Counted from the first letter of the stretch, positions 4,939 to 30,660 are shown. The stretch is DNA of 33,000 bases from Dicyema japonicum (GCA_011109175.1 RDEW01000042.1:471504-504503), one strand, 5' to 3'. Numbers and translations are program-made. The notes: a model not told the origin generated them from the sequence alone.

Positions 4939-5320
4939 TTATATACTCGCACAAACAACCATTTGCTGGTCGATCCCCAAATACTTTAGAGCCTGAAAAT
5001 AAGAGAAGGAGGATTATTTCACTAAACTCATCAAATGAGAGCTTTCCGTCTCCGTCCTTATCTGCGTATAGAATTGTTCTGTCGATTACTTGTTCGAGTT
5101 AGTTATCTCTAAATTATCCCCGAACATCAATTTCATCAACTTGAACATCCCCTCACGTGTTAGGAACCCATCGTTGTTTACGTCGTATATTTTAAATGCG
5201 ACTAGAGCTTTAAAAACGTTACTCACATGTAAGCTTAGCGAGGGGGTCGTCCTTTATACAAAACAGGGATATCCCCTTGATAAATTTTAAAGGAACAACG
5301 CCACTAACTTTCCGTTCCGT
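4939..5320 (-). pseudogene. PPP3R1: Calcineurin B regulatory subunit relic (C-terminal two-thirds, EF-hands 2-4) with two 25-nt introns
   Basis: Spliced reading: KFIKGISLFCIKDDPLAKLT|FAFKIYDVNNDGFLTREGMFKLMKLMFGDNLEIT(fs)LEQVIDRTILYADKDGDGKLSFDEFSE|ALKYLGIDQQMVVCASI*. Introns at 5202-5226 (GT-AG) and 4993-5017 (AT-AG, donor apparently mutated). 1-nt deletion near 5100. Confidence 0.9.
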
Positions 5321-5329
5321 CCTGCACAT

Positions 5330-5880
5330 AACGGGGATCCATGTTAGCTATCGCACCCCAAGCAGAACGCACATTTGACATAGAAAGCTGAGTGACATTT
5401 TGAAAATTTTTAGCAGTTTTATCATCAAATTTAAAATTTATATTGCTCTTATATTAGAAAACAATAAAAAACTGAGTTATACTCTGAGATAAATTCAAAT
5501 GAAATAAAAATCCCAAGTGATGAAAAAGTCCGCCAAATTTATCGAATTCAGTAATGCTTCGCTTGAGCCACAATGGTAACTTCTCTATCAATTTATTATT
5601 TGAGTATCTAGCATTCAAAAAACTAACAACCGTTTTGTCAAACAATGTTTTAAGCCATAATCAAGCCTGTCTCTCATAAGTTTCCCAATTTACTGATTCA
5701 CAGCTCTTGTGACTTCTCTGTTGTACCAGACTCTCTTTTCCTTAGTATTTAACAAAAAGGCACAATTACTACCTTCTCGTCGATAAACGCAGTCTTTACT
5801 TTTACTTGGCTCACTGAAGGCATAGGGCAGTCCAATGGGAATCAGAGTCCGCTCAAAGTCGTCGATAAAATCCAATCCTC
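5330..5880 (-). pseudogene. Unidentified intron-bearing gene relic abutting calcineurin B
   Basis: Removing a 32-nt GT-AG segment (5741-5772) joins supplied ORFs 5690..5875 and 5454..5645 into one frame with a single TGA (RQA*LWLKTL). No family recognised. Confidence 0.35.
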
Positions 5881-6299
5881 GCTTGCTTGAAGTAAAATAA
5901 AATCTTCAGACGACAAATGGCCTTATAATGGGGCCTTTTGTATTATTAGAAATAGAACCATAATAATTATTTATAACCTAAACAAATAAATATTTAATAA
6001 TCTATAATTTGATGGCAAACCTCTGATAATTTGTTCTTTTTTCGCTTTTCTCCAAATTTTCCTTCCATGAGCGATCCCTTAGCTCAGTGAAAACAGATTT
6101 GGCGTAATTAAGCAGTATGTAAAAACTTGTCATCTATTTATTACTATAAATAACACCCAATAAGATTAAGTAGCATAAAATGTCATGGCTACCAATAGTT
6201 TCCCCAGAGACTTAATGTAGGCCAATTTTCTCGATTTCCACAAGTAGAGATCAATTCCACTTTGTCAGATCCCTTCAATAAGTTTTCATGTTGATCACG

Positions 6300-6830
6300 T
6301 TGCAATAATGATTTTGTACTTTAAATTTCCTCAACTTGTTAGCTCGTAAATAATCCATAATCGACTTGTTGAACAAGTCGTTAGGGTCGAGTGTCTTGCT
6401 TGGGAGAATAACTGAACAGGTCTTTCAGACTGCAGTATAGAAGTACCAATAAGACAAAGTTTTGCCTGTTTAACTGCAAGTGTGTCTGCAAAGTCTCTAT
6501 CAAGGTGAATGAGCACTCGTGAGACTGATTTGCTTAGAGACCATCCAAATCGTTAAAAAATCTGCAAAAAAACATGTTAATACTTCCAGTGCGTCAGATA
6601 TATGTGAGAGGGCGAGCCCCTTGCTGTTCACGTTCATTGATGCTATGGAATGAGAGATATAGTAAACATGTTGAAGAAATTGAGTTCACCAGCTTTTCGT
6701 CAAATAATGCTTTTATAGCATGAGAACTTGACCTCTTGAATTGAACCTTAGTAAAGATGTCCATTACATTACTTAAATGACTAAAGAAATACAACCTGCC
6801 TTGTACAACCAATCGGGGTTTCTCTCGTCA
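6300..6830 (-). pseudogene. Unidentified gene relic with probable micro-intron
   Basis: Removing the 22-nt gtattaacatgtttttttgcag (6562-6583) links GLALSHISDALE to IF*RFGWSLSKSVSRVLIHLDRDFADTLAVKQ. No family recognised. Confidence 0.3.
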
Positions 6831-7289
6831 GTTTATGAGATTGAGTGGCTTGTACGAGTTTTAGTGATTTCACTAAAAGTCAATATAATCAAATAAAGTA
6901 GAAGTCATAAAATAGTGGCATTGGAATTATAAATAAGCTATTTTCAATGAATTGAATAATTTTCGAACAAAAATAACCAATAACGTATTATTGGAATTTT
7001 CAATCAATTTACTAACATGCTAAATAGTGTACTTGCAATATTTAAGGTTTTTCAATCAATTTAATAATATAGAAAAAGTGTAGATTTGTGAGCTTTAAGT
7101 TGTTTTTAACCAATGGAACAACGTTTCAACCAATAGAACAAAGTAGAAAGCTAAAATATTATTTCAATAAATTTAATAACATTTCAAAAAAGTGAATAAT
7201 GCAATATTTTGCGATCAAATGAATAATACTAGTAAAATATTACTTTTTAGTTGCATCACTTCAATGGCAGTAATGGCTAAGTATATATG

Positions 7290-8746
7290 TCCAATACCCA
7301 ATTTGTGCTCAACAGACTCCTCAGAGCTAGCATTCTTCACGTGTATTCGTTCATCCATTTCATAAATGTAGTCAACTCAAGAATAGTCCAGCAAGAATTG
7401 AAGAAAGCTGCCACACAAATGACTTTCTTTTCAAAAACAGCAAATCAACCAAATTATGAGAATTGTCACAAATTTAGACATTTCCTTTGATTTTAACGCC
7501 ATGTATAGCTGTCAACTAGACGTTAGTTGACCATAAAATACGTAGGTCGATTAGGTAGTTATAAGGCAAAAATATATTTCGGAACTTTTCATTTCCTTAG
7601 CAAAGTAATATAGACAAAATCTGCGGCAAACTAAATTAAAATTGTCACTTCAGTTCCATTCTGTATGAGATCCTTAATGTCATCCGTGGAAGCCAGATCC
7701 TCGTATTGACTTTTGCCAAACTATGTAATGATCAAAATTAAATTAAAATTATTCCAAAGACCGAAAGTAACCAAACTATCTCCTTGATCCTGACTCGTTC
7801 CAGCGCTCTAGAACTTGTCTCCAGGAATCGATATTAGAAGAATAATCGGATCATCTTGATGCCAGCCAGGCATTGGACGTCTCTTCATGAAGTCGATCCA
7901 ATTACGCCAGCGGATGGAAAATAATCTATGACCAACTAACCAAATAGCACCACATGATGCAACGGGGTCAATAAGTAATTATTTAAAAAAATTTAAATAA
8001 AATTTAAATAAAATTCTCTCAAAAAATAAAAAAATTACAAATAATCGAAATTTAGAAAAAAATAAAATATTTTAACTTAAACTCCTCTACGTCCAATACA
8101 AGAGGAATGTCCTACTTGGACGGTCTCCCCACTGGCCTCTCTCTCCTGCCTTGATGGAATCCCACCTAATGCTTTCTGGCGATGTGAACCCCAAGTATTA
8201 TTATTATATTAAAATAATAATAACTTAAACTCAATTGTATTTCGTGCTTGTATGGGAACGCGCTTAGAGTTGGTACATATTGTCTTTGACGTTGTTGGAA
8301 CATTCTTTCTTGACAACAGAATGGATGCACATTTGGTCTCTCGAGGCAATAACGCAAGTCTTCATTCTACTACATTCCCATCAAATATACAAATCAGCAA
8401 ATATTGTCCTCTTGAATTCACCCACCGCGTGACTCTGCTGAGAATGTTTACAAGAATAGTATATTATTTTTGGAAAATTGACATCGTTCGGAGTACCAAG
8501 TAATCTGATAATGTATTTAAGTTGTAAAGCAACGAAGATGCGCAAAGCAGCGATAAAGTTTTCCCGGTTCCGGTGGGGCTTTCTAAAAGTCCGTTTGTAT
8601 TCTTCCACAAGAAATAAGACATACATTTTTCAGGAACTCAGTAACAGATAAAATCTTTACTTATATACGGGCGTGAATGTTATTTGTGGGGCATATAGAG
8701 TGTAAGGAAGTTAATATCAATCCCATTAATCGTTGTTATATTCCAT
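7290..8746 (-). pseudogene. RTEL1: RTEL1-like (XPD/FANCJ family) DNA helicase relic, N-terminal part, split by a ~0.5-kb insertion (~7721-8229)
   Basis: ATG at 8746, [27 protein letters not shown] (Walker A, 8557-8583), [31 protein letters not shown], then past the insertion DLASTDDIKDLIQNG, FCLYYFAKEM, LPYNYLID (7546-7566) and HGVKIKGNV*ICDNSHNL (decayed DEAH). Introns 8602-8624 (23 nt), 8367/8370-8390 (24/21 nt), 7621-7648 (28 nt) and 7509-7531/7532 (23/24 nt). Confidence 0.9.
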
Positions 8747-9420
8747 TTTAATTACATCTACGATTAAAAATTAGTACTCCACATCAATGCAAAAGTTTCC
8801 TTGTTAACTTTTAAAAATGTTTAAAAATGTATACCAAAAAGGATAATTTTCTCTTTTCCACTAAGCTTGATCATTTTTTAATGAGTTTCCAAAACTGTGA
8901 TTCTGGGTGGACTTTTGGTTGAAGGACTATTCGCAACTACGACTATGGGAAATAGACTTAATTTTTTGTTTATTATTAATTTTTTTCTATTGTATAAATC
9001 AAATAAATTAATTCTTTAGTTGAGATTATGTAGTAATTTGGATTTTATTGTCTAATTGTGATAATAAATGCACTTCATAAAGAATGTACTAAATTAGTTG
9101 AATTAATTCTATTTTATTCATATTCCTGTATTTTAGTTCTTAAAAGAGTAAGCACCAAACATTAACTGACAGAACAGTTCTTCATTGGATTTTTGTTTAG
9201 ACACCTGGATTGTTTTCCCTTCACATTAGAATATGTGTTAATAATCGGGTATCCTGACATGTTAGAACTAGATCTCACGAGGGATAACTCTCTCATGCTC
9301 AGCGCTTGTAAGGTTTATTATTTTGCAGATCACTGAGTTGAAGAATAGATAAAACTCATTAACTAGGTGATCTCGGTCCAACAAATAGAAATATCAATCA
9401 GACGGGGAACCTGTATTACT

Positions 9421-9568
9421 ATTTTTATTTGATTTAGTAACACAACGTATCTTAAGGAGGTTTCAAGGTATTTGAATAGGATTTTGTTTAGACGACTTTA
9501 ATGACTTCCGTTGTTGTTCATGACCATTTTTATTTAATTTAGTAACACCACGTATCTTAAGCAGGTTC
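9421..9568. repeat. Imperfect direct duplication with 105-bp period
   Basis: atttttattt[g/a]atttagtaacac[a/c]acgtatcttaag[g/c]aggtt at 9421 and 9526. Confidence 0.85.
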
Positions 9569-9574
9569 AAAATT

Positions 9575-9760
9575 TTTTAAGAAGGGTAATATCAAACCCA
9601 TTAATTTTTTGACACTTTCCTCCATTTCCTTAGAAAAGTAATATAGAGAGATCTGCGGATAAATAAATTTAAATACTTCAGTTCAGTTCCCTTCTGTATG
9701 AGATCTTCATTGACCATGAAAGCCAGATCCTTTTATTTGACAATTGCAAACTAATAATAT
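9575..9760 (-). pseudogene. RTEL1: Second, rearranged RTEL1-like fragment
   Basis: 9623-9760 aligns with ~7590-7730 (EDLIQKGTELK|..YYFSKEM, 24-nt intron 9653-9676). It is followed by attaatgggtttgatattaccc (INGFDIT), homologous to the gene start near 8715-8732. Confidence 0.8.
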
Positions 9761-11043
9761 AAAACAAATTCGCAACAAGAGAAGTAATCAATTGAAGTCG
9801 CTATTGCCGCATCCCGGATTATCATTGTCGTCAGACTCCTCCACGCTTTTTTTGAGATTGCGATTTTTGGAGGTCGTCTAGTTCAAATCGAAGTAACTTG
9901 TAAAATCATCTGTCAGAAGCTGCACGAATAGGATGATAGTTAATATTACTCTAATAGACCAGATTTGCATGTAATTTTAATTATGCAGCAATTAGTGACC
10001 CATGGAGTATCATATGAATGATCACTTCTCTACAAAATGTTTTGGAAACTAGTATTGTTTTTTTCAAAGTCACTCTTGCGGTGAAAGACAACTAGTCTAG
10101 AAATAACATGTGATAAAAATTATTTTTCCGTGGCTATAGAACTAAGAAGCCGTAGGATTCTTCACTGTGCCCTTTCTGAAAGAAACGAAGAGTTGAGAAA
10201 AATTACCCTGCGAATCATTCTGGCTAAGACAACGAATCGGGATTATTTTAGTTAAAAATACAATATTAAACACCTGTAGATTACCATCATTGTTATTCCA
10301 CGTTTGAAATTATCTTATTTTACATTAAAAACATTTTTTAAACGGCAGCTTGTCGACATTTTGTGCTATACGGCTAGTTAGTTAAAATTTATTTTGTCCC
10401 TCTGATGCCGTCATTGAATCCACCTTATTAAGAAAATTCAAATGCCTCGTCAGCATCAAAAGAATCCAACTTTTCTTTTACCGGCAACAATATCCTCTAT
10501 GGAGACAATTTCTGGAATCATTGGAACATATCACGATTAAGGGGTTAGATCAGTTTTTACTTTTGGTCTTTGGAATTATATTATTTTATTATTTATATAG
10601 CTCAATTTGAATACGAATTTTGGGTTTTATTGCGATTAGATTCCAAATTTAAGATTATTTGTAAAAAAAGTATATATTTAAAATTTTATCGTAAAATTGG
10701 AGCTCATTAATTTCTCTTAATCCAATCTTTTTATTTATCTTGAGCACATAAAAGGATTCTTGCTATTAATTTAATCTAGGATTTTTTTTCCGCTTTCTGC
10801 AAGCTGCCCAATAAGCCTGATTAACCTTATGTGCAGGGACAGAACACATTGTAGAATTTGTGTTCATATTGAAAGCAAATACTGACTATGCTAAACCTAT
10901 CCCATAAGGAAGAAGAATATTAGTTAAAGGAGCTGGCTGATTTAGCTTGGTTTAAATAAACTAAAGGAACATCTAGTAGTTGTTAAGTGTGTTGTAGTTA
11001 AAAATAAAATATTTTTATTTATTAAAGTGATAAGCACAAAACA

Positions 11044-11313
11044 TTAGTTAGCTGCCGCCCACACTGCGTGGCTGTTCCCTTTCAGAATTGCTAGCGAGAT
11101 TCGCGCAAACAGCCAGCGGCGTTCGCGGAGATTTCCAGTGCATGAGGTGATCCGTTTCAGAGCAGGATCTTGAAGCGCACTTGTAATGATTGTTCTGGGC
11201 GAACGTATCTGTACATCTCACGTCCCAAATAACTGGTTTCCCGGCTTCAATGGGAAGTTGGTCATCCCTCCCGTCTGGTCGTTTCCCGTCACTTTTGCAT
11301 AACCCGACCGGTT
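11044..11313 (-). mobile_element. CRE-type RLE relic with stop codon, copy 3
   Basis: PVGLCKSDGKRPDGRDDQLPIEAGKPVIWDVRCTDTFA, then (internal deletion) RITSCTGNLRERRWLFARISLAILKGNSHAVWAAAN*. Confidence 0.8.
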
Positions 11314-11315
11314 AT

Positions 11316-11480
11316 CGATTCTTGGATGAGGGCAATGTCCACTCTCAAATGAGACAAAAGAGATCGTAATTCCAATACTTTATTGCGGACTCCATTTACA
11401 TTTAGTTGTAGATCACTTAACGTGCAGTTGGGTCCCGGATTTGGATCTACATCACCAGACAGTAGTAGAGAGAAAATGGA
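11316..11480 (-). mobile_element. LINE ORF2 5' fragment: 2A-like peptide plus start of APE endonuclease
   Basis: SIFSLLLSGDVDPNPGP (11430-11480) followed in frame by NCTLSDLQLNVNGVRNKVLELRSLLSHLRVDIALIQES. Confidence 0.85.
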
Positions 11481-11661
11481 GGAGTTGGTAAGCCACCCTT
11501 CTGAATTTCGCAGAAAGGTAGGGAAAGTTAAACGGCTCTCTTCTATGCAGAACTTGCACTGAGCGCCACGACAACAACAGGTGAACCGTATGACGCCACG
11601 TTATTTTTACTTATTTATTTAACCCTAAGACTACTAGGAGAGATAGGTCAAAACTAACTAA

Positions 11662-11885
11662 TTAAGTGATCCCAGCTTCCAGCAACATCCGGACTCTCTT
11701 CAATTGGTCCTCTGATAATCCAACCGCACTTGGTTTAGGTGTGTCTGAACAATTGTTACAGCCATAAAGCAAGGAAGGAGATTTATTTCTTGCAGCGATA
11801 ATTAGGTCGTCCGCATAGGACAAAAACATAGTGTCCTGGTCATTGGTAGTAGGTAGGTCATGTAGAAATAGGTTGAAAAGACGTT
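11662..11885 (-). mobile_element. LINE RT fragment joined by deletion to ORF2 C-terminus
   Basis: LFNLFLHDLPTTNDQDTMFLSYADDLIIAA (YADD 11806-11817), then AVGLSEDQLKRVRMLLEAGIT*. Confidence 0.85.
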
Positions 11886-11923
11886 ATTCTTGATTTTTTG
11901 TTATTGGATTTTAAAAGATATCT

Positions 11924-12026
11924 ATAAATTTTAATAATTCATAAATATACTCAAAAATTTTAATTTTTTTATCAATAAACTAATTTGATAAATGCGTCTA
12001 GTGAGATTATCAAAAGAAAAATTAAA
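11924..12026 (+). repeat. Dispersed ~105-bp AT-rich repeat, copy B
   Basis: Aligns with 241-345. Confidence 0.85.
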
Positions 12027-12269
12027 TAATCACAGTATTTATCAATTCCAAGTCTGAAACTAGGCTTTCCACCAGAATAGGAGTACCGACAGTAATCCCT
12101 TTGCTCATGTAATTGGTAACAATGTGTGTATTCTCAGAGGTTCGGTTTGTATTCAAGGTCGATATTTTCGCGTCTATTTGGGTTGAAAAATCACAATTTA
12201 TGGGGTGTGTAGATTTTTCCCAAACACTTTCAACAGTCTCAGCTTTAACCCACTTAACGGGTCGAGCAC

Positions 12270-12700
12270 CTTTTTTTTCCTTGCAAAAATTCGCAATGTG
12301 CCCAAACTATTGACATCGGTCGCACCTTGTAACCGGTTTTCTGTATTATTCAAAACGAATTCTCTGGAACCCAAAGACTATCCCCAGTCTCACATACTCT
12401 AGACTTCAAAGTTAATTTTACAACAGGAAGACTGCGCCAGTCCTTCATAAAACGTTGGAAATAGAAACCAGGTCGTAGGGATTCTTTAAATTAAGATTCA
12501 AGTGATCATCTGAGACCCAAGAAAAGATACCCTTCACAACAACAGAGGAAGGATATAGGAAGGAAGTAGTAAAAACATGTCCATCATTACCAAATGGGGC
12601 TCTCAAGCCAAAATCATCGACAAAAGAGTCGATATTGTCTTTTGAGGCAAATTCAAGCGAAATTATGCTTAATTTTCTTAATGTAATTCGTGCCTTACTG
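12270..12700 (-). mobile_element. LINE ORF1 (gag-like) relic with CCHC zinc knuckle
   Basis: Mostly open frame (SSVVVKGIFSWVSDDHL...) ending in KPVTRCDRCQ*FGHIANFCKEK (C-x2-C-x4-H-x4-C at 12283-12324). Confidence 0.7.
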
Positions 12701-15074
12701 GCTGTCGCTGAGTTTGATAGTTTATAAAACGTTTAATCCGTCCCAAAGCCATGTTTTTTCAATTTCCAGATTCACTACAAAAAAATCATAAGCTAAGAAG
12801 ACGAAACAGATCCTCCTGATACAACAATGTCATATAGTTCATCGGTGGGTATTTCAATTTTTTAAACTTTCAAAAACGAGCCTTAAAATTTTGCTTACAT
12901 TCTGCAATCCAGATCCCTGAGTTGCAAACAGACATTGGTGATTTGGAAAGTTTGTGTTAGAAATTTCAGGTCTAGTTGCGTAGAAGATAGAAGAATCTTA
13001 AAATATATGGAATACCTCTTTGAAGGCTTAATATGATCAGTCCACTTTAGGACATTTCATAACAACCAGAAAAATCGCAACATGAAGTTATTATAACTAA
13101 TCGTAAAGGGAGAAACTAAGGAATGCTCTTAATTTCTTTGCTTTTTCTTTTTCTCGTGTGTATTTCCTTTTGACTATCCAGTTCCGCCGTAAATTTATAC
13201 TGATGACAGCGTCATTTCGTCAAGCCTAGCGAAAGGGTGTCTTTTTTATACTGGATTTCAAGGATTCGAGTGAACGGAACAACCTTGAGTTAATTATTCA
13301 AAAAGAATTTCTCAAAGATTATTTCTCTAAGAATTCCCCTCTGAATTAAATTCCGAACTACACTTTAGTTATGATTTGGCCGATTCAAGTTAGTGTAAGA
13401 CGGACTTCAATGGGTGCTCAAGCTCGTGGCGTAGATGTTGTGCGAATTTCATTCTCAAGTTGAACTTGGTGTGATTCAAGCTGTCGCTGTATCTGTAAGT
13501 TTGTGGAGAAGGATCCAGTTTTGTTTGTTTGTTTTGGAGTATTTGATAAGGGTTAACCCAATCGGTGGTCTAGAAAGGGGGCATGGTTAATTTTTATTAA
13601 TTTTGTGCTTCCTTTTACTGTGTTCTTTATGGGTAGGGAAGATAAACGTCCTCGTCTTCAAGGAGTGCTTTGATCAGTTTCGGAGTCTTTCAAGAGAGTT
13701 GCATTAAATTTCCTGGTCTTAATATTTTATTATATGTCACCATTTTGGTTTATATTGCAGTATTCGAAGTAAAATGACGATGCTCCTTATATAGTCAATA
13801 CTCCCATCATCATTCAGAACTGTTTGAACATATTCCTCTTCATTGAGAGTAATCATGTGTGAATAAAGCTAGTAGTTTAAGTCCTTATATGATTAATTAG
13901 GTTATTGCATACGCCGTTTTGCATAAATCTGAGGAAAACCGTCCGTTCTTTAACACCTATCAAAGTCGATTACTTCTGTAATCGTTTTTTAAGTGAAATT
14001 ATTCTTTTAGAGACAAAGTATAGCTGTGTGATTCAGTTGTCCAACCAGGATAATAATTAAATCATAATAAATTTGAATTAATTAAAACCATTTTATATCC
14101 CAGAAAAATGAACGATTAAGTTAGTTAAATGTTAAATTGAACTCCACAAGTTCCAAGTACATTATACTTGTTTTTAATGGCACTGCAGACTGAAATAACA
14201 TTATTAATTACGTAATTCACTTGTCGGCCTGCCGTATTTTCTAAATATATTATTTTCTAACATATACAATTTATTATCTTCGATAGATAATTGTCTAGTT
14301 GCTTCTATCTATACTAATATAATCTCATACGCCTTAGGATTATGAATGAATCAATGCAAACGATAACACTATATTATTATTAAAAATACTCATTTAAAAT
14401 AACAAAGTTGGAATAACTTTAAAAACTTGAATAACATTTATTCCTCGAGGAAAGATCTACATTAATTACAAAAAATACAATTCAAGTAATGATAAATTTT
14501 CCGCAAATTCGATCGATATGAATTTGAGGGAATACAGTATTCAAAATCTAAATTTAAAAAAATATATAACATGTACTTAATAGTAGGTGGAATGTTTGGT
14601 TGTCTACAGATTTTAAACTTTCATCATAATAACCACAATTACTATAAATATTAATAATTGATACAAAATCTAATTCAATCTTATTAATGAAAAGTTGACA
14701 TCAGGTTCAAATTTAATATTTTGAACTTCTAATCCAATTACTTTAAAATCAGATAGGCCAGTTATCGAAACTGTACAATCATTCCAATATCTTAATAATT
14801 TATATTTAATACAGAATTTATTACTGTTAATTCGTTTGGGCAAATATTCTGTGATGTCAAAAAATCGAATGACAAGTTTAACACGAAAAAAGTGAACATC
14901 TATGAGATTAAATACCAAAATAATGAATATACGATTACCACAAGAAATAAAAATTATTACATGAATTACAGTCGTCATAATTATTTATAATTTTATTAAA
15001 TGAAGTGTTGGATTAAAAAAATAAAATTAAAAAATATTTTAATTAAATTTACACAATTAACATGGTTTTCAAAT

Positions 15075-17250: not shown

Positions 17251-17339
17251 AATGGGCTTTCTTTATCTTCAATAAAACAGAAGAGATTACTTCCGATTAA
17301 CTTTATCTCTCATTCAGATATCAGTGAGGTTTAAAGAGG

Positions 17340-17680
17340 ATGAATTCTTCCCTCTCATGTGGGACAGATTCTATCCCTGGTATTTTACTAAAACATCTTG
17401 GACCTATTGCGATTGATGCAATTGACAGTGGATATATTTATCAACCAGACAAAAATACCTTTCTCGAAGAAACTGAAAATCTTGGGGATCATTTTCGACA
17501 CACAGATGTCCTTTTCATCTCACGTCGACGCTGTCGCTGAATGTTGCTCAAGAAAGCTAGGGATAATCAAAACTATTTTCGGTGGCATTGAAACCCCTTT
17601 CCCAGCTTTGAAATTGTTGTACAAACAAGTCATTGATCCATCTGTCAGCTATACTGGGGGATCAATAATATCCTAATGTG
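17340..17680 (+). mobile_element. Internally deleted LINE ORF2 (RT N-region fused to RT motif 7/thumb)
   Basis: GTDSIPGILLKHLGPIA is directly followed by KLKILGIIFDTQMSFSSHV...LKLLYKQVIDPSVSY. Confidence 0.8.
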
Positions 17681-17749
17681 GATACTTGCGAGACATAAGA
17701 AAAACCCAGCTTCATTCAGGCGTGTTTCTCTGTTACTAGCATAATGTTA

Positions 17750-18110
17750 AAAATATTGGAAATAGACTATTCCCCAATTATTAAGAACGTTGTATCAACA
17801 TGTAATTTCTGCGGTATTCATAACTGAACGGTCTTCTTCCATCCATTTAACCTCGTTGAAGTATTCCATCCGTACGGGATTCTCAAATAAACTCAGACAT
17901 ATGAAAACTGTCATCTATTTTGTAGATATTCATTAAGCGTTTGACTCCGAAAAACTTGAAAAATATTCAGTCGGATATTCCTGGACGCTTTACGGTTAGT
18001 TAACATTTTTTGGCGCTGGAAAAAAAGTGATTGTTTTGGAGATTTAAGATCGGTAACTTTTTTACAAATTGAATCTCAAGCATAGATCGGAAACTTTCTT
18101 CATGGTAAAA
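17750..18110 (+). mobile_element. Heavily decayed LINE RT core fragment
   Basis: KTVIYFVDIH*AFDS corresponds to the RT D..KAFD motif. The flanks are frameshifted. Confidence 0.5.
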
Positions 18111-18420
18111 ATAGTATCAGGTGATACAGCTGTCTCATGAAGTACCTAGTGCAAAGAGGGTATCAAAAAACACTTGTACTTTTCATTACAATAGAGTTTG
18201 TATTGGAAATCCACTTCAGAAATCAACGAAACTGAGACTTTGCTGATTACATTTTCTAACGACATCCTTTCATCATCGAGTACGTTGTTGTACTCGTATA
18301 GAGAATGTACTCGGTCAGTAAGGGTACTTAATTTCACGGAAAATTCGTCAACGTAGGATATCATATCATTTAGGTGGTCTTCCGCCGCAGAAACAAAATT
18401 TCGCTGTGTTTTATCATTCC

Positions 18421-18900
18421 TTAAGTCAATTTCAGAGAATCCCGAATGTAAAAGTCCAGATTATCCCTTATTTCTTTGATATTCGCCAATTCCTCTTCCA
18501 TGGAGTCCTCAATATTCCTCAAACGAGTAAACATCTCCAGTCTCTTCTCGTAAATATGTTTCCGCCTTTCCTGTTCATTTTGTTTATGTACAATCTGTTC
18601 TCTAAGGTTCAATAAGGATCTCCTAGCTGATCTACGTCCTCCCACTCCCTGCTAATTCTCTCCTCAGTCTCCTTTATGGTTCGACTCAGCTGACGAGAGA
18701 CTTCAACATACTGCGATATTCCGGTACGGAAACCTCAGAGACGATTCTCTCGCGATCCTTGATCTCCATCTTCAGGTCCATGGTCTCCGTAATCCGAAAG
18801 TCCAATTCATTAGTCATTGTTTCATGAACCTGAGAATTCATTACAATCGTTTGATTCTCTGTCAGTCTACCCCATTCTTCCTTTAATCGCCCAATTTCAG
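18421..18900 (-). pseudogene. Intronless coiled-coil-like coding relic, unidentified
   Basis: Three consecutive frameshifted E/K/R/L-rich frames (EIGRLKEEWGRL..., RQLSRTIKETEERISREW, RRSLLNLREQIVHKQNEQERRK...). Confidence 0.4.
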
Positions 18901-18956
18901 CGTTAAAAAACTACATTCGATATTTACTAATACTTTTTCGGGATCACTGGTCTTGT

Positions 18957-19618
18957 TTAGTGTAATAACGTGGGTAATACCCTTATCTTCCTCGCAAAAC
19001 ACATCAGACGAATGGTTTTCTCCAAACATGAGAAGGCTGGGGATATTGAGAAATGAAACTGTTCATGTGGTTTCCTACCAGCGATTCTCTCAGGTATTTT
19101 GTCAGCCGTGACTCCTTGTAGGGGACATATGTGGCTTTTTCGCACAACGAGTTAAGGACATCTTCAAATACGGACAGATTCGATCCTAGAGCAGTGTTTG
19201 TGTTCAGGTTGTCCGATTCGTTGTATATGAATGCCAGAACGAGTGTTCCAACGTCAGTACTCGCTTCATGAAGTGTAATTATGGTAATTGTGTAAATTGA
19301 ATGGCGGGGACCACTGGGGTGATCTTTGAGTGTCTCAAGTATATGATCCACATCCTTCATATGTGTTATAGTTATTTCAGTGGGGGCTTTGAGTAGATTG
19401 TAGTCATCTAATTCATCCTCCTTTATGAGGTTTTTAAGTTCCCTGTCACATAAGTGGATAGCTGATATTCGTACGGCTCTCTCTGGACAGGGCCATAACT
19501 CTGACACGATAAAAGAAAGTATCTTAGCTGAGTGATTTTCGAAAGAAATATGATGGATACTTAAAACTAGCTGAAAAAATAGTACGGAATAATGTAAAGC
19601 GAAAGCCAAAGTATTCAT
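18957..19618 (-). pseudogene. Divergent kinesin-like motor domain, frameshift near 19050
   Basis: VRISAIHLCDRELKNLI, RHSIYTITI, NLSVFEDVLNSL and YVPYKESRLTKYLRESLVGN (cf. [20 protein letters not shown]), then a frameshift to SISPAFSCLEKTIRLMCFARKI. No GxxGxGKT, SSRSH or DLAGSE. Confidence 0.75.
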
Positions 19619-19907
19619 GTGCTTATGGGAAATTTGGAAGTGCTTTTTTAACTAACTGAATAACTAAACTAATACTTTAAGGTTCTTTTTCAATAAGTAA
19701 GTGAAAATTATTCCCTGATTTAGTTTAAATCCAAAAATCAGAAATTTAAATTAATTATATAGAAAAATTATTTTTCCATTTGATTATTTTTATTAAAATA
19801 AAACAATGGAACAAACACAAGACAATTTTTTATTTTTGGTGCTCAACTTATAAAAAAACTCTATAAAATAACATCTTACATAATATGGAAATAACTCATT
19901 CATTCAG

Positions 19908-20130
19908 TTACCCATGAATAATTTTCGTTTTTTCAGCATCTCGAGGTTTTCCGGCAAGGATAGGTTCAATCGCGGGCTTAGTAGCCATTAGCTTTTTCGA
20001 CTGACAGTGAAAACACTTTATAAGAATTTTGTCGACCTCAAGTCTCGAAATTCCGTAAATTTTACTTTTGGGAGACTGCATAGTAAATCGCATCCGAAAT
20101 GGATCAATTGATGTTCATATTACTATCATG
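19908..20130 (-). mobile_element. Integrase HHCC zinc-finger fragment (Ginger/Gypsy, SCAND3/KRBA2-like)
   Basis: HQLIHFGCD (frameshift) KIYGISRLEVDKILIKCFHCQSKKLMATKPAIEPILAGKPR. Confidence 0.6.
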
Positions 20131-21169
20131 AAAATACTACCTCGATCATTTTACTTTCAGTTCTCTCTCTTGAATCGAAAAGTTCCGGTCCCTAGTAAAA
20201 ACAGTGGTTCTCTCCAATGATCAACTACTCATTTACAGCGTCCTTTTTTGGATAACTGTTATTTTCTCGACATTTGTCCATGAGATGAATGGATCTCACT
20301 AAGCCCACCAGTAAGAATTACATTCCTCGATATACTGTATTTATAACTTTCTAAGATAGGGTGTTGAGATCTTCCATATCTCTGAGAAGCTTTTAAGTAG
20401 GTCGACCTCACATTTTGCCATAGAATTTTCGATGTTCTATGAGAAGCACATGTGATTGAGTGAACAGGAAAAATTATTAAACAAAAATAATATTTAATTA
20501 TTTATTTCAATGACACTCTGAAGCTACTCATAGTAGGAGGACTCTGTGGGTAATAGGTAAGAACTGCTTGTTATCTAAGAACCTACCCAGAAAAGGACGT
20601 TCACAGTGATGGAACGATAGACTTTTGGAAAGAAATGATCCTCGCAAACTTCTTTAATTCTACGTACTTGAGTGGCAATAATGAAGACCAACTGGAGCTA
20701 AACGTTCTATTAAAGTCAATCTCCTCTACCAACAGGTCCACACTTTCGACTTATTTTGCACGAAGATAGGAAGACCTATCAGATGCATTTAAAATGCAGT
20801 CGCTATATACACCTGAGCGTTACAGACTGATTTCCTATTGGCAACTTATCTGCCACCTTTAACCTGAAACTTCCAACGAAAATGCTCGATAGGTAACATT
20901 TTCGCAATTTTAATACGTACTTGACATTCTAATAACACTGGTTTTACTGTCCCTCTGTTCCTCCCCGAGCTCATTTTTTGACATTGCCTTATCGCTTAGC
21001 CCATTTACTCCCAGTAAATCTCCAAAATGACACTGTTATCCGATTAATTAATATATGGTCTTAGATTATAAACTTGTCAGGATGAATTACTAATACACGA
21101 GTTTAAGTGTAATTAAGCACATTTTTAATTTATGTTAATAAGTGATTTAGCTAATGAACGGTTCTCTCA

Positions 21170-21440
21170 TCAGGATCTCATACAAAAATCTACAAGAATT
21201 GGGGATGTAAGATGATAGAATCTCGCTGGCACATCCTGAAGATGGAGTTGACCTAACGGAGCAATGGAAGAATACTCTTTCGCCAAATGGGCCGTTTTCG
21301 TGGAAGGGCTAGGATAACTTTGACATTCGTCTTACAAAAGGACTTAAAATTCGTAAAATGAGAATTAAAATCCGCTGACGTCCTGGACACACTAAGAACC
21401 GTAGATAATAGAAATGTGGATGAGATTGACTTCCAAATTC
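21170..21440 (+). mobile_element. RTE-like ORF 3' end
   Basis: GRFRGRARITLTFVLQKDLKFVK*ELKSADVLDTLR is homologous to KRFRGRSRTTLRVVLQNDLKAVKKTLASGDDLDSLR at 31543-31640. Confidence 0.75.
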
Positions 21441-21783
21441 GATGTCAATAAATGGCTTTCGTGGAAGTTCTAATAATACCATTTTTAGTTTCCAGTGGAT
21501 TTTATCCCATCACGACCACCTACATTCTGCCATTCTTCAATGGGGACACCGCCAGTCAATCGGGTCTCTTACTCTTTGTCATTCCCAAATGGGGACATCG
21601 TAGTCAATACGGGAAACCCATCGTCTTCAAACCAGACATACGGAAAGTCAAGACTGCTGAATCATGTTTGTGAATCGCACAACCAGCTAACAATCTCCGT
21701 CAGAAATATTAAATAAAATGTTATGGTTTAACGATGGGTTTATTCATTTAAATGAAAAATTAGTTATAAATTATCATCCAATT

Positions 21784-22030
21784 TTAGTTTGTTTTGGGTT
21801 CTTTGCGAGAATATCTGGAAGAATTGTGCAATCTAGGGTTTGGGTTAGCACTGTGGCGATTTCGACTTCTTCTGGAAGAAAAACTCATGTTGCAGCCAGG
21901 AACTGTACAAAAATGATTTTCATGCAGATGAATCGCATTCACGTGGGATTTTAAGGCTCATCTATCACAGAATGTCTTTTCACAACCTTTGCAGACAATT
22001 CTCTTCTTTCCGGACTCTTCGATGATTCCG
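21784..22030 (-). pseudogene. disco: disco/basonuclin paired C2H2 zinc fingers with premature TGA
   Basis: [61 protein letters not shown]. The TGA (21958-21960) replaces the conserved Gly of TFCDKGAL. Confidence 0.92.
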
Positions 22031-22089
22031 CCATAGTAATTTTTGCTTAACAGGCAAACTTGCACGTCTAACAAATTTACCCCCGAACT

Positions 22090-22343
22090 TTTCCCCCTAA
22101 TGCTTGACCACGCCGCAATCAAAAATAACGTCTTCGGCTTCATCGGTCTGTGTGATCAAGAAGCAAGTCGTTTCTTCCATTCAAGGTTGGAGGCTTCGAA
22201 TACACGAAATTTGGGGAAAAAACACACCTCTCTTCAAACTCTAATGAAAGATGATCGTTGTCTATTCAGGAAAGCCATAGGTACTCTGGAGGAACATAGG
22301 AAAAACCTCTCGATTTTTTTGAGGCGTACTTGGGATCACTTAA
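22090..22343 (+). mobile_element. LINE ORF2 3' end (GIT* family)
   Basis: DDRCLFRKAIGTLEEHRKNLSIFLRRT (frameshift) GIT*. Confidence 0.6.
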
Positions 22344-22429
22344 TTAGTTGGTTTACCTTTTCTTTTTTGGTGTTCCTTTTTTCGAAGTTATCAAATAAAT
22401 AAATAATAAGGAATTAGGAAACCCATGCG

Positions 22430-22557
22430 GGAGACTACCAGTCTCTCCTAAACGACAACTGGATTGAGTTACTCGAGAAACATTTCGAAAGGCAGTGAGG
22501 TCGCTGACGGTCCACCTAAGGAAAGTGTCAGAGTTACTAGAAGCTGGGATCATTTAA
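22430..22557 (+). mobile_element. LINE ORF2 3' end (GII* variant), tandem to previous
   Basis: RETFRKAVRSLTVHLRKVSELLEAGII*. Confidence 0.6.
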
Positions 22558-22609
22558 TTAACTCACTTTGGCACTTTCTTTCTTAGTATTCTATCTCCCC
22601 CCATATAGC

Positions 22610-22845
22610 CTAACGATGGAATCCCCATTCTATTTGCTGGCGACTTATCAGTTCGATCCCATCGGTTAGGGATACAAGTCACCGAGTCCAGTAAATACTG
22701 GAAATACCTTCACCCATAGATCCTCTGAATGAGGAACGTCGTGGATACAGGAATTTGGTGAAAACACCTAAATTCATCCTCTGTGATGAGGAATGGCGGG
22801 ATTGCATAACTTGTTAGGCTTAACGACTTGGCTTAGGTCATGATA
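22610..22845 (+). mobile_element. APE endonuclease C-terminal half relic
   Basis: PILFAGDLSVRSHRLG (cf. GDFNA.H..WG), TFTHRS..GTS, and a decayed L.SDH end. Confidence 0.55.
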
Positions 22846-23110
22846 CTAGGTCATGATATGCTTTTGTGAAGCCGGTCCTGTTATTTACCTCTTCCTGCTG
22901 GGGGGACCTCAGTCTCAGGAACCAAGAATCTTAACTCTCACTTACCATCCATGTTTTATGTATCGTACTGCCCAGCAAAAAATCGTTGCACATACTCATT
23001 TTCCTTACTTGGAAAGACAGGCAATAGAACAATAATAAACATTTCCATAAACAAACAAAGCGAGTAATCCAATTGAATAAATTAAATTCATTAAAATTAA
23101 ACAATAACAA

Positions 23111-24110
23111 CTATCCTTTGATAACTTCAATTAGACGAAATTTGATGCACTTTTTACTAACACACATGTGTCCACTATTTCGGAAACTTCTTCATATGAC
23201 TGGGTAGCCTCTTCCATTATCAACTTGGGGGAGGCCACTCTGATAGAGATTTCCTTTCAGTCTTATTACTTCCAGCACCGTGACACGTGGCTTTAAATAA
23301 CTCAGAAAAGCCCACGTCTGTCTTAGTCTGCACATAAGTACACGTGCCCATCGTCCTAGGCTGGTCAGTCAACTACTAATATAAACTCTAGCAAACTTGG
23401 TAATCAATAGGGGTCAAAGGTTATAAGGCGGAAATGGTCGGGATGATCCCATCCGTCTCCCATCAACCTCATGTCCTCCACTTTAGCGATGTTAACGAGA
23501 CGTCATATATCACATGCATGTCTAACTCTTCCGGGAAGTCTCAAACCGTTTGTAGAAGGCCTTCAAATTAGTGTGGACAATACCTGCCGCGTAAGAAACG
23601 TAATCGAGAATCGGTTCACTAAGGAATAGTTGACCGCTGCAGCCATCGCTTTTAAATAGTTCTGGCCTTTTGCTGAACTGATTCTTGCGCAGGCCAGTTA
23701 AAGTCATTCATATCAATCTGGTCTCTTCTTATAGACTTGTCCATTACAACCAGAGAATCTTGGTTGAATCAAAAGAATTAACCAGTAGCATCTTGGTGAC
23801 TCAGTTTTCGACTTCCACTGTGGATCACCACAAAGACTTGGCTTACTTTGTCGATCCCCATCTTGGAGGAGGCAAATTGTCGTAAATTGAATCTCTACAT
23901 AGTGATTTTTCGCACCCTATTTACATAGCTGAAGAAAATCTTTTTTCTTGGACTTGAAATTGACTTTGGAAGGGTCCGCCTGTAACATGCGACGTACTCT
24001 CCACAATACTCCTTACCCTCAGCCGACGAGTATCCCTGGGGGTCTATAGAACATCAACCTTGTCCATTCCACGCCCATCAACAGGGACTCTTCAGATCCC
24101 TGAATTACAA
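23111..24110 (-). pseudogene. RTCB: RTCB RNA-splicing ligase relic (C-terminal ~60%) with four micro-introns
   Basis: GYSSAEGKEYCGEY, RMLQADPSKV, NHYVEIQ, KMGIDKVSQVFVVIHSGSRKLSHQDAT|[40 protein letters not shown]|AFYKRF, DMHVIYDVS, NIAKVE, DYQ|[29 protein letters not shown] and VIKG*. Introns 24036-24058 (23 nt), 23759-23782 (24), 23561-23583 (23) and 23373-23396 (24). Many frameshifts and deletions. Confidence 0.95.
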
Positions 24111-24799: not shown

Positions 24800-25060
24800 A
24801 ACCTCTGTAAGCAGGCGTGCGCCCAGCACAAGGGATTGTTACACATTCGACGACAGTGGGGTGGACATGTCATTAAAATGCGACCACCAGAGAAAAGTAG
24901 CGGATTTCTGTCAATGGCTTGTTTGAAAGACCGTCGTTAAGCGCGTTCACGTGGACAGAAGACGTTCATACACTCAAACTATACGTTCTCCCTATATACG
25001 AACGTTCCCAGGACAACGACAGTATTTTACAAGGTGCGTGCTTCCACTGTTTGTCGGACA
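24800..25060 (-). mobile_element. GIY-YIG endonuclease fragment, probably Penelope-like
   Basis: HLVKYCRCPGN (frameshift) SYIGRTYSL..SVHVNAL. YIG lies at 24990-24998. Confidence 0.5.
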
Positions 25061-25109
25061 CTGGTTACTTGCTCCATATTATTATTATTATTAATGGCAA
25101 TGTCCGTGG

Positions 25110-25265
25110 AACCAGAAAAGTTAACTAATTTGAGATTCCACTTTTTCCATACATCTCTGGACATGCGCTATGAGTCGTTTCCATCCTCCCATGTTTCTCG
25201 CATCCGCCCTCAGATCAACCAGATCCTCAATGTTTTCAATTTTCTTCCTACTTGGTCCATAACAT
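25110..25265 (-). mobile_element. RTE-like extreme 3' end
   Basis: KIENIEDLVDLRADARNMGGWKRLIAHV parallels the L.S..DL..LR..A.DR..W tail of RTE elements and the copies at 21.3 and 31.6 kb. Confidence 0.45.
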
Positions 25266-25399
25266 GATATAAATTGTTTCATTTATTGGCATAATTTTAA
25301 CAAATTTAAAAAATAATAATAAATTGTATCTTATGGAATTGTAGTGATCAAGAAGTATCGATTTGAAAGTCCAACCTGGTATGAAGGATTAAATGTCGA

Positions 25400-25720
25400 T
25401 CATTAATTTTTATACTTCCAAGACAGGTCTTGCAAACCACGTGACTGATTTATTTATCTCTTAGCTTCTGGAACTTACTATAAACATGAAAAACCTGATG
25501 TTGCATTAGAATTGGTAGAATCGGGGAATTGTATGTCTTTGGAGTTGATCCACCTCGAAGATTCTTTAATTCTGGTATATATTGATTTGAACTAGAATTT
25601 AACAAAATCCAAGGGAAGTATCCTCGAGGATTTGGAACTACTGAAACCTTGAATAAAATAAAGAAAAGTAGTCAAATTATTAGCAACTTCATCAAGTCCA
25701 CTCAAAGAAGAGGTCGATTT
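25400..25720 (+). pseudogene. Unidentified gene relic with 21-nt intron
   Basis: Removing gtatatattgatttgaactag (25575-25595) gives VFGVDPPRRFFNS|EFNKIQGKYPRGFGTTETLNKIKKSSQIISNFIKSTQRR. Confidence 0.4.
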
Positions 25721-26426
25721 TCACAGAATTTCTTGAATTTGATGTTTCAGTTTATTAACTACTGCACGAACTTTATAAACATGAATAATAAATATTATTC
25801 ACGATTATTCGAATTCCTCTCAATATTTCAGAAATCTCTCTCACCGTGTTCTGTACTGTTGCATTAACAATTTTTAGAGAGACTACAAAGACTGGTAGAT
25901 ATAATCAGCTTTTAAGCCATATCAAGAATTATTGTGGGAGACATTAAAGATGTCTGCACTATATCTACTATAATAACAGTATGACATTCGGATTATATTA
26001 AGGGCACTCAATTCATCCACAATTATTCGGAAACTCAGTAAAACGAATGTTTTAAGTGTTTATTAAGTAATGGGAGATATTCAATCAGATTGTGGATATT
26101 TTTAAGACTCTGAAGACTAAAGTTCAAGTTGGATTGTGAAGTATAGAGTGCGACTGGATTAGAATTTTGAAGGTATTCTGAAATAGGCAAAAAAGGATAA
26201 TTTACGTGAATATTACGCCTGCTTGAAATTGGAGAATGAAGGACTGTGGAAACGCCACAATATGAAAATGAGTTCCTCAACCTCATGAAAATCTCATCCT
26301 TCCAAAAATGCATATTAATATAGCACTCAGACATGACCTCTCAAACTGCCTTCAGTGGATTTGTCCTTCTTCCATCGGTTTACTTACAACATATTTCAGG
26401 GATCCCTGGATATCGTCCGACATTAT

Positions 26427-26775
26427 GAATGGACCACGTGACAGCACGTGAGGACAATAGTGGCAAACAAGTCAATGATTTTCGGAATCTCTCAGAGCAC
26501 AGTATTTGAAACTAGTGATGTAGAGGTCATGACTAGATTGGTTTCCCCGGATAACAGGTTTGGGTGGTAATGGATGATGCCCGAAACTTGACTGGACCAC
26601 GTGACACAACGTGTGCACGTTACTAGATATTGACACAACGATTTTCGGGAGTCTACAGGTCTTAGTTTTTGTAAGAAGTAAGATAGAGGTCATGACGAGA
26701 CTGGTCACTAACGGATAACAGTTTTGAAAGGTAATGGCTGATGGCCCAAAGATTGAATGGATCACGTGTGCACAA
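26427..26775. repeat. Imperfect tandem repeat, 163-165-bp unit, ~2.1 copies
   Basis: Units start at 26427, 26590 and 26755. Shared blocks: ggaccacgtgaca, gattttcgg, tagaggtcatgac, cggataacag and ggtaatgg. Confidence 0.85.
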
Positions 26776-28747: not shown

Positions 28748-29790
28748 TCAAATAGGGAATAACCACGCAGTCAAGGCAGCCTCTATATGACCATTTGGGC
28801 AGGGCTTCGGCTCATATCTCCTGTTAGTCTGGAGATATGAGATGAGTAGCTCATGCAGAAAATGATCTGGCATCCTTGCTTCTATGATGAGAATTCTTTG
28901 TTTTGGATGAAAAGATCTTCTGTATATATAGGGAGATGTTGGGCCGATAATAGTCTTTGCGGCCTTTTGAATATTTGATGGTCGATGATCTTGAAACAAA
29001 GACCAAGCCTCACTTGCATAGAGCAATGTCGGCTGGACAAACTGTTTGTAGATCATCTGAAGGCATCCAGCGTCACTTCTGAGAACCTTGGTAACGACTT
29101 TTAATATCATCATCTCTTCAGTGCGTCGTTACCGGTTATCCAAATGCTTTGCGAAGGAGAGTCCCTGTCGAGTGTCACTCCAAGTATATTTGGTGTGGAA
29201 TTGATAAGAATTACTGTGTTATTGAGAGAAATGTTAGGTTTCAATGAATACTGCCTCTTGCACGTTGTAAATAGGGTAGTATAGGATTTTGTATGGGAAG
29301 CTTCAAGACAGAGTTTCTTGAGCCGAGAAGTTAAATTGTTAAGCGTGCTCTGGGCCATCGTGGTAGCAGTTTGTTACTTTTTGTCCTTTGCAGCGATATT
29401 GATATCGTTTGCGTATGATAGTACAAGACAATTTTCGTAGTGCGGTTTCGGAATGTCATTGATGTACAAGTTAAAAAGGACTGGCGATAATGGAGATCCT
29501 TGAGGGACTCCATTTTGATTTTATGTTATTGCAAATCACTTGTCCACGTCTCCACTTAAGAAGTTGGCAATCTACAGTTTTATTTGGGTGGATGCATGTA
29601 TCGTAATTTTCACAGTAAGGAGTTTTCTTAAGACTGTGTCGAAAGCCTTTGTTATATCAACAGAAACCAAGACTGTTTGTTGTTGCGGTTTAAAGGAATT
29701 GAATCCCTCCTCAATGAACTGGCACAGGGACGTTATGTTGCTGTGGAGTGTTTAGCCCGGAATCCATGTTAGAAAGGAGAGAGCAGGATG
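28748..29790 (-). mobile_element. Decayed LINE ORF2 (RT and thumb)
   Basis: HGFRAKHST, VLVSVDITKAFDTV, GVPQGSPLSPVLFNLYINDIP, YAND, TPNILGVTLDR and YKQFVQPTLLYASEAWS across frameshifts. Confidence 0.92.
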
Positions 29791-29883
29791 TAGTCCCTTC
29801 TTTGCTAAAAAATAACATTTAAATTAATCTTTAAAATTAAAAAAAGCATATATTAATTTATAAAAAATTCAAATTTGCCAATC

Positions 29884-29940
29884 GAATCCGCCGTAATTTC
29901 CCAGGTCCCAAATTTGGCGGATACGAGAAGTTTTACTGTA
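29884..29940 (-). mobile_element. Solitary Tigger/pogo-like terminal inverted repeat end
   Basis: Minus strand TA|CAGTAAAACTTCTCGTATCCGCCAAATTTGGGACC...GGCGGATT, with a TA flank and an internal atccgcc/ggcggat hairpin. I found no partner TIR. Confidence 0.4.
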
Positions 29941-30279
29941 CGTTGGAATTGTTTTGTATAAATGTAGTTAATTTTTTTTACATTCATGTGTTAGTGGAAG
30001 ACCAAGATTAACTTTTCCAGATGTATGACCTTAACTCTGAAGGAGTTGAAACCACGGAAAACTTTATGAGATCGTTGGCTGACGATCGAAAAGTATGGAA
30101 GAGACTACCATTTAATATTCTATTTTGGATTGCACATACTTCACGTGAATTGTGGGATTAGTGAATATAAAAATAAAACACAATTGTTAAACAATCATAA
30201 AGCAATCCTTCACAAACCATTTTGAAAATGTGTAATAATTAGATTTATTGTCACTTTTTTGAGTTGAATCTAGTGGTCG

Positions 30280-30660
30280 ATAAACATGTATGGAAATGCA
30301 AAAAGTGTAAGAAAAGGACGAGCATCAGAAATCTCTCATGATTTCAAGGTAGTGCAACTTTGATGATTTTTAGGTAGCCATCTAAGTCTTAGAACAATTT
30401 TGGAGCTAATGTGTATGTGGGCGAAAGAACATCTCGTTTGCGAAGTAGCTTTCGAACTTGAAATATCCAAGACAACTGTTGTGGACTGGAATACCTTTTG
30501 TCGAGAAACATGCGAGACATGGTTCGAGACAGTCCCACAGTTGCTTCGTGGACTTGACAAAAATAATCGTTTAAATTTATTTTGTTAATTAATAGAACCA
30601 AAAGTCGTGGAAATCGACGAGTCTAAATTCTTCCACCGCAAATACCATCGCGGTCAATGT
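30280..30660 (+). mobile_element. Merlin (IS1595/ISXO2-like) transposase N-terminal relic with two micro-introns
   Basis: Spliced: VDKHVWKCKKCKKRTSIRNLS*FQ|GSHLSLRTILELMCMWAKEHLVCEVAFELEISKTTVVDWNTFCRETCETWFETVPQLLRGLDKNN|QPKVVEIDESKFFHRKYHRGQ. Introns 30349-30373 (25 nt) and 30569-30595 (27 nt). Confidence 0.9.

Follow-up and report, generated by a model that had tools for sequence, protein, structure and literature searches.

Spliceosomal introns of approximately 26 nucleotides (nt) have been reported for dicyemids in 2010, 2019 and 2026 (PMC6543705, PMC6736024, PMC13644364). These reports include a survey of introns in 40 genes of Dicyema japonicum (Ogino et al. 2010, as cited in PMC6543705), and a median intron length of 27 bp has been given for Dicyema sp. 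(Zverkov et al. 2019, PMC6543705). In a comparison of 51 animals, introns shorter than 30 bp were found only in myxobolids and D. japonicum, and in both little more than GTa...AG was left of the splice signals, apart from a few weak A residues ahead of the AG (Hadjez et al. 2026, PMC13644364). Here we describe such ultra-short introns (mini-introns) in a 33-kb stretch of D. japonicum DNA (GCA_011109175.1, RDEW01000042.1:471504-504503), which is referred to over its entire length as the window. A reading of this DNA made from the sequence alone (hereafter the sequence-only reading) had proposed systematic spliceosomal introns of 21-32 nt in several of its genes, and its premise that introns this small are rare in animals but reported for dicyemids is borne out by the literature. 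The mini-introns are real and were correctly recognised, yet they are already known.

We consider it highly probable that the segments described below are ordinary spliceosomal introns of the U2 type, reduced in size to ~23-30 nt, and that this D. japonicum window reflects a genome-wide dicyemid state. The likeness to the mini-introns of Dicyemida covers the GT-AG ends, the lengths of 23-30 nt, the ancestral positions, the seemingly weak 5′ and 3′ signals and a background of ~36% GC that is rich in long interspersed nuclear elements (LINEs). Nothing essential sets the window apart, although here some of the introns belong to decaying copies and some to a transposase gene, and all are seen at the level of DNA. 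The myxobolid Myxozoa (Henneguya, Thelohanellus and Myxobolus) are similar in their median intron lengths of 22-27 bp, their GTa...AG signal and the A residues upstream of the AG (PMC13644364). However, these are cnidarian parasites with relatively few transposable elements and a GC content of 29.1% in H. salminicola, whereas the window is LINE-rich and has a GC content of 35.5%. Near-minimum GT-AG introns are also known from ciliates (~25 nt in Paramecium, 15-16 nt in Stentor) and from the nucleomorphs of chlorarachniophytes (18-21 nt), but the gene content of the window is of animal type, with a KIF3-like kinesin neck, a disco/basonuclin-like zinc-finger pair and LINEs carrying a 2A peptide.

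Twelve segments are listed as introns, eight with good evidence (23-27 nt) and four with moderate or low evidence (24-30 nt). Their lengths are 23, 23, 23, 24, 24, 24, 25, 25, 27, 27, 29 and 30 nt. All of them (12/12) have GT...AG ends, and six are independently pinned by protein homology. At these six junctions, one in a calcineurin-B-like gene, three in RTCB and two in a transposase, homology is present on both sides with exact residue continuity and GT-AG ends. The frequencies of GT and AG are each ~0.05, and the probability of meeting both ends by chance is ~0.003-0.01 per homology-pinned segment; six pinned GT-AG junctions therefore cannot be due to chance. Among the 12 introns, the third donor base is A, T or G and the acceptors are TAG, AAG, CAG or GAG. 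In most of them AA or AAT is found 5-11 nt before the AG, in a sample that is small for a sequence logo. Signals in these 12 introns are compatible with the reduced pattern of a GTa donor, a bare AG acceptor, weak A residues ahead of it and no polypyrimidine tract. Thus far, it is partly confirmed that the window holds real GT-AG mini-introns of 23-30 nt in animal genes. What was said of a systematic class of 21-32 nt stands for the existence of ultra-short GT-AG introns, while several of the individual calls turned out to be single-base insertions or deletions (indels) or chance GT..AG pairs.

The clearest set comes from an RTCB fragment on the minus strand (23114-24093; Pfam RtcB, in four colinear pieces). 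Reference fragments were aligned to the DNA with a protein-to-DNA aligner that chooses among introns, frameshifts and gaps. The spliced alignment yielded a 24-nt GT-AG intron in phase 1 at QDAT/D (23782-23759; here and below a slash within an intron junction marks the splice point), a 23-nt GT-AG intron in phase 0 at TRQ/AF (23583-23561) and a 24-nt GT-AG intron in phase 0 at DYQ/LT (23396-23373). Many of the RTCB fragments in the database are open reading frames (ORFs) from other eukaryotes that continue past the end of an exon. At the TRQ/AF site, 118/154 of these fragments stop matching after RQ and continue with a GT-derived valine. Four fragments (P0021, P0042, P0075, P0093) diverge after QVAT with a GT-derived glycine, in the same phase as the QVAT/D site, and one (P0092) reads through the DYQ/LT site as VDYQ/V. 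Because the read-through in fragments of other eukaryotes coincides with them, the three RTCB mini-introns lie at older intron positions and in the same phase. The comparison of QVAT/D, TRQ/AF and DYQ/LT with other eukaryotes, which the sequence-only reading had suggested, thus gave a match in both position and phase. Of the four lengths it had listed for RTCB (23, 24, 23 and 24 nt), three are recovered by spliced alignment. The fourth, a 23-nt GT..AG segment at 24058-24036, is in the wrong frame; what interrupts the gene at this point is a 13-nt insertion that separates MGVEW from SIDPQGY. A search for protein homologues of an RTCB exon gave only four foreign fragments, under a length filter that hides full-length relatives.

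A further pinned junction lies in the calcineurin-B-like EF-hand gene (4937-5660, minus strand), which is identified by matches to calcineurin B in the PDB and by Pfam EF-hand. Its C-terminal half is clear and its N-terminal half is degenerate. Removal of a 25-nt GT-AG intron in phase 1 (GTGAGT...CTAG, 5226-5202, flanked by ORFs of 40 and 37 codons) at KLT/FAFKIYD joins KLT to FAFKIYDVNNDG, and the latter exon aligns with calcineurin B residues 91-127 (1mf8_B). Two introns of 25 nt had been proposed for this gene and only this one, at KLT/F, survives. For the second, the pieces on either side of the GDNLEIT/LEQVID break map to residues 91-127 and 129-157 of 1mf8_B, with 2 nt left for residue 128. 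By these PDB chain coordinates the break (GDNLEIT[aa]LEQVID, 5087-5118) is a single-base deletion. The candidate in the 5′ half of the gene is 27 nt and not 25 nt long (GT-AG, 5472-5446, bridging ORFs of 62 and 46 codons) and is held with moderate confidence; neither a useful PDB match nor a homology anchor was found for the 5′ piece that it interrupts.

The remaining pinned junctions are found in a dead copy of a putative Merlin/IS1595 (ISXO2-like) DNA transposase on the plus strand (30243-30720), recognised from a frame map and from protein-atlas clusters. The frame map places a 25-nt GT-AG intron at 30349-30373 (FQ/GSHLSLRT) and a 27-nt GT-AG intron of 11% GC at 30569-30595, the latter holding the sole stop between the helix-turn-helix (HTH) piece and VVEIDESKF. 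Homology at the 30349-30373 junction leans on the zinc-ribbon/HTH consensus of IS1595. Among look-alikes retrieved from a protein atlas with a language model, 71/100 for one exon piece and 63/100 for the other fell in ISXO2/IS1595 sets, the bacterial relatives of eukaryotic Merlin elements. The likeness to this superfamily, which is related to bacterial IS1016/IS1595, consists of an N-terminus with a zinc ribbon and an HTH, after which comes the VEIDE... start of the DDE domain. The copy in the window differs in being truncated after ~30720, in its in-frame TGA (30339-30341), in its two host-style mini-introns and in giving no match at the level of profile hidden Markov models. The "Merlin" of the sequence-only reading, with introns of 25 and 27 nt, keeps both introns. 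Its identity as the NF2/Merlin protein is rejected, as no FERM motif was found in any frame and the two listed lengths (25 and 27 nt) are matched by the transposase introns at 30349-30595; on these motifs and look-alikes it is, softly, assigned to a putative DNA transposase of the Merlin/IS1595 superfamily.

Independent evidence came from a kinesin-like gene on the minus strand (18149-19651; Pfam Kinesin 247-302/327), comprising the C-terminal half of the motor, the neck and the coiled coil. Two introns that are absent from the sequence-only list were recovered here by ORF repair, both of 23 nt, GT-AG and phase 0: TSDPEK/FFNAEIGRLK (18933-18911) and RERIVSE/YVEVSRQL (18733-18711). The junction TSDPEK/FFNAEIGRLKEEW also recreates the kinesin neck motif. 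Reads were drawn from four 2019 runs of one sample, which contain 33-37% of the words sampled from the window, and their contigs were placed on 18100-24099 at 95-100% identity. Single extra bases are present after 18624 and 19052 in all or nearly all of the contig depth, and after 18979 and 18450 in part of it. When these four read-supported bases are added and the two 23-nt introns removed, a single ORF of 487 codons runs across the whole gene, compared with 256 codons for the insertions alone and 215 codons for the intron removal alone. Comparison of the window with the Illumina contigs lists 18 substitutions in this gene, of which 14 affect the third base of a codon and 10 are synonymous. 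The excess at third positions indicates that the kinesin-like gene is under purifying selection and that the variation is real. A 28-nt GT..AG segment in the same gene (19009-18982, arms of 214 and 32 codons) is a false intron, since the read-corrected frame, with the insertions after 19052 and 18979, runs straight through it. A search for protein homologues of the kinesin ORF was blank, under the same length filter that hides full-length relatives, and the alpha-6 piece gave no useful PDB match. Contigs of three runs also show a structural variant in this gene (18450->19356), in which 905 nt are skipped and a 9-nt filler (CCAAGTCCA) is present.

A degenerate helicase-like gene of the RTEL1/XPD family (5618-8751, minus strand; Pfam DEAD_2 and Helicase_C_2, with a weak FANCJ alignment) contributes segments of moderate to low support. 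These are a 29-nt GT-AG intron (8533-8505, ORF arms of 34 and 40 codons) between exons that correspond to motif I and motif Ia of XPD-family helicases, and a 24-nt GT-AG intron (8390-8367, or 21 nt when ending at 8370; ORF arms of 79 and 33-34 codons) before the DEAD_2 exon MKTCVIASRDQMCIH. Lengths of 23, 21/24, 28, 24 and 23/24 nt had been listed for this gene. The 24/21-nt intron is retained at this moderate to low level, the 28-nt GT..AG segment (7648-7621, minus strand) is ambiguous and leaves a 1-nt frame problem, a site at 7541-7516 is ambiguous too, and the other listed introns were not located. A second RTEL1-like fragment (9500-9800, minus strand) shares 78% identity with 7480-7760 over ~200 nt. 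The putative intron is present there too, with its CCGCAG 3′ end conserved, and this 24-nt counterpart (9676-9653) has the same 1-nt frame problem. The gene itself looks dead from its sequence. There are in-frame TAA codons at 5692-5690 and 7476-7474, both at conserved positions, DNSH replaces DEAH, GK replaces GR in motif VI, and there are several frameshifts. The weak FANCJ alignment stops at ...NQ. One more candidate, a 30-nt GTGAGT...CTAG segment at 22566-22537 (minus strand), bridges two ORFs with arms of 47 and 60 codons and is of low confidence; a family search with the flanking ORF pair gave no match.

RTCB, by contrast with a merely misassembled gene, is represented here by a genuine unprocessed pseudogene, in which three introns are kept alongside a truncation, an in-frame stop, frameshifts and a lost segment. 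It starts at approximately residue 170 of the full protein, and the N-terminal part was not found anywhere in the window. An in-frame TAG stands at a conserved leucine (23919-23917), and in the spliced alignments seven frame changes are single-base deletions, giving at least seven single-base frameshifts. The KERTLLVH segment is missing; in RtcB this segment contains, we assume, the metal-binding (catalytic) histidine. The RTCB contigs reach about half the depth of those from the kinesin-like gene. The frameshift at 23420 is polymorphic and is carried by roughly one half of the reads in depth. Both observations fit diverged neutral haplotypes. One read contig leaves the window at 23256 (upstream side, minus strand) and encodes DEDLLEVIRQ, which has no counterpart in the RTCB copy of the window. 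Therefore, a more complete RTCB allele or paralogue exists in the sample.

Could the segments be no class at all? Were most frame-restoring GT..AG segments due to chance, and were the frames disrupted by indels that stem from misassembly or from the decay of pseudogenes, no systematic set of mini-introns would be needed. The CnB (calcineurin-B-like) break at GDNLEIT/LEQVID and the seven RTCB breaks are indeed 1-nt deletions, and the convincing-looking 28-nt bridge in the kinesin-like gene proved false. Moreover, in a reference-free statistic covering segments of 20-32 nt and all 256 boundary dinucleotide pairs across the whole window, GT-AG was not enriched among ORF-bridging segments (113 ORF pairs, against a mean of 118.6 over the 256 end pairs). 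This statistic has no power: GT-AG bridges ORFs no more often than other end pairs do, and thus frame restoration alone is no evidence of an intron. Chance does not, however, account for homology-pinned junctions that are GT-AG every time, with three of them at ancestral positions, nor for the two introns required by the 487-codon kinesin ORF, and mini-introns are documented genome-wide with transcripts in the literature. We regard this explanation as very improbable. Some further points nonetheless tell against our preferred reading of the segments as shrunken spliceosomal introns. Several candidates in the RTEL1-like and CnB genes cannot be placed with single-nucleotide precision. Pfam, NCBIfam and word searches with the transposase pieces were blank, so that the Merlin assignment is soft and leans on look-alikes and on motifs known from this superfamily. 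The contigs keep every mini-intron within 18100-24099, and the four runs, although classed as RNA, behave as DNA: every bin is covered, genes and spacers evenly, the depth ratios between runs are constant (~10 : 1 : 0.6 : 0.9), a repeat at 22100-22299 stands out by its depth and some indels occur at ~1:1. The lack of 21-32-nt joints in the contigs is therefore silent on splicing.

The damage to the coding regions can be explained in more than one way. If all genes in the window were functional, every stop and frameshift would be an assembly artefact and there would be no relics. The insertions after 18624 and 19052, which restore frames and are carried by the whole or almost the whole Illumina contig depth, agree with this, as do contigs that match the window exactly over 320-360 nt bar one indel. 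These one-indel contigs suggest consensus indel errors in the PacBio-derived part of an assembly with a Falcon PacBio RS II component. Indel errors cannot, however, yield the DEAH to DNSH change and the two TAA codons at conserved positions in the RTEL1-like gene. Nor does this explanation sit well with an RTCB copy that lacks its first ~170 codons, has lost a 7-residue segment with a conserved histidine and carries an in-frame TAG, or with its polymorphic frameshift and half depth, as expected of diverged neutral haplotypes; we consider it improbable, if less so than chance GT..AG pairs. A variant genetic code is rejected, because the in-frame stops fall at leucine, alanine and valine positions and not at one reassigned residue, and introns as the cause of the in-frame stops are rejected because homology continues straight through them. 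A more speculative possibility, which we hold tentatively and think less likely than its converse, is that the locus is a graveyard of unprocessed, intron-retaining pseudogenes (RTCB, RTEL1-like and zinc-finger) caught during gene loss from a reduced parasite genome, with damage that is partly haplotype-specific. If so, such neutral copies would separate mutational from selective limits on the length and signals of mini-introns, and the transposase introns would show intron shrinkage reaching resident mobile elements. Accounts of these genes as relics in the sequence-only reading thus apply to RTCB, which is a pseudogene, and probably to the RTEL1-like gene. They do not apply to the entire locus, nor to the kinesin-like gene, which is constrained and in which at least two to four frame breaks are contradicted by Illumina contigs.

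In the window, mini-introns are found in host genes as well as in a resident, putatively Merlin-type DNA transposon, with only the GT and AG kept. Ancestral intron positions and phases have been retained, as seen in RTCB, and splicing would rely on the GT/AG ends together with some A residues located 5-11 nt before the AG, as the literature leads us to expect. The locus is a LINE-rich mix of a constrained kinesin-like gene, an unprocessed RTCB pseudogene, a degenerate RTEL1-like gene, a stop-bearing zinc-finger gene and a dead transposase. Single-base indels in the assembled sequence add to these, some of them contradicted by all Illumina contigs and probably PacBio-derived, others polymorphic in the reads. 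It is owing to these indels that frame breaks far outnumber introns.

Introns of ~25 nt probe how short an intron the animal spliceosome can still remove, a point made earlier, genome-wide and with transcripts, for dicyemids (2010, 2019) and myxobolids (2026). The window contributes no new principle on the intron minimum. The proposal that a minimal spliceosome substrate could be read from these relics does not hold, as decaying copies are unsuitable for the purpose and the substrate has already been described genome-wide (PMC13644364, PMC6543705, PMC6736024). There is a practical warning, in that this assembly has roughly as many single-base indels as introns, and hence a frame restored by GT..AG is not evidence by itself. 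A small lead is that conserved genes may persist as intron-bearing pseudogenes and that a DNA transposon bears host-style mini-introns.

The published D. japonicum genome is 67.5 Mb in size with a GC content of 36.7%, a heterozygosity of 1.24% and a mean intron length of 38 bp (Lu et al. 2019, PMC6736024). Repeats make up 48.9% of it, with many LINE ORF2 copies, and the assembly is a merge of Platanus (Illumina) and Falcon (PacBio RS II) assemblies with four mate-pair libraries (Lu et al. 2019, PMC6736024). The same paper names RNA-seq runs (SRR8061618, SRR8061630-33) and a transcriptome assembly (GHAB00000000) of this species. The window (33 kb, zero Ns) has a GC content of 35.5% (0.355). Over the 6 kb of 18100-24099, it differs from the reads at ~31 indel places and ~126 substitution places. 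Its GC content, LINE load, match to four 2019 runs of one sample, stretches identical to the reads with isolated 1-nt indels and haplotype differences all fit the published genome and its assembly. The proposal of a reduced, dicyemid-like parasite as the source likewise agrees with the GC content (35.5% against the published 36.7%) and the heavy LINE load.

No rRNA or tRNA was found in the window by Rfam and tRNA scans, and a search for contigs encoding a 204-aa ORF of the window gave no record. Pfam and NCBIfam searches with single exons were mostly blank, since the exons are just 25-80 aa long and divergent. A C2H2 zinc-finger gene (21787-22155, minus strand) encodes a disco/basonuclin-like C2H2 pair with an in-frame TGA (21960-21958) inside a finger, at the position of a sense codon. 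At 22100-22299, each of the four runs has a read-contig depth 50-100x that of the adjacent bins; the interval is a high-copy repeat that overlaps the 5′ side of the zinc-finger ORF.

Lastly, pieces of non-LTR (non-long terminal repeat) retrotransposons are scattered across the window, at 1-2000, 11050-12750, 17300-17700, 21100-21450, 25000-25300, 28750-29750 and 31546-31969. A LINE ORF2 on the minus strand (ORF 11292-11600) contains a 2A-like self-cleaving peptide motif, LLLSGDVDPNPGP, at 11430-11456, directly upstream of the start of the ORF2 endonuclease (LQLNVNGVRNK...). Its neighbour is a gag-like CCHC ORF1 at 12025-12732. Within a LINE tail there is a structural variant (21250->21366), in which 115 nt are skipped in all four runs.

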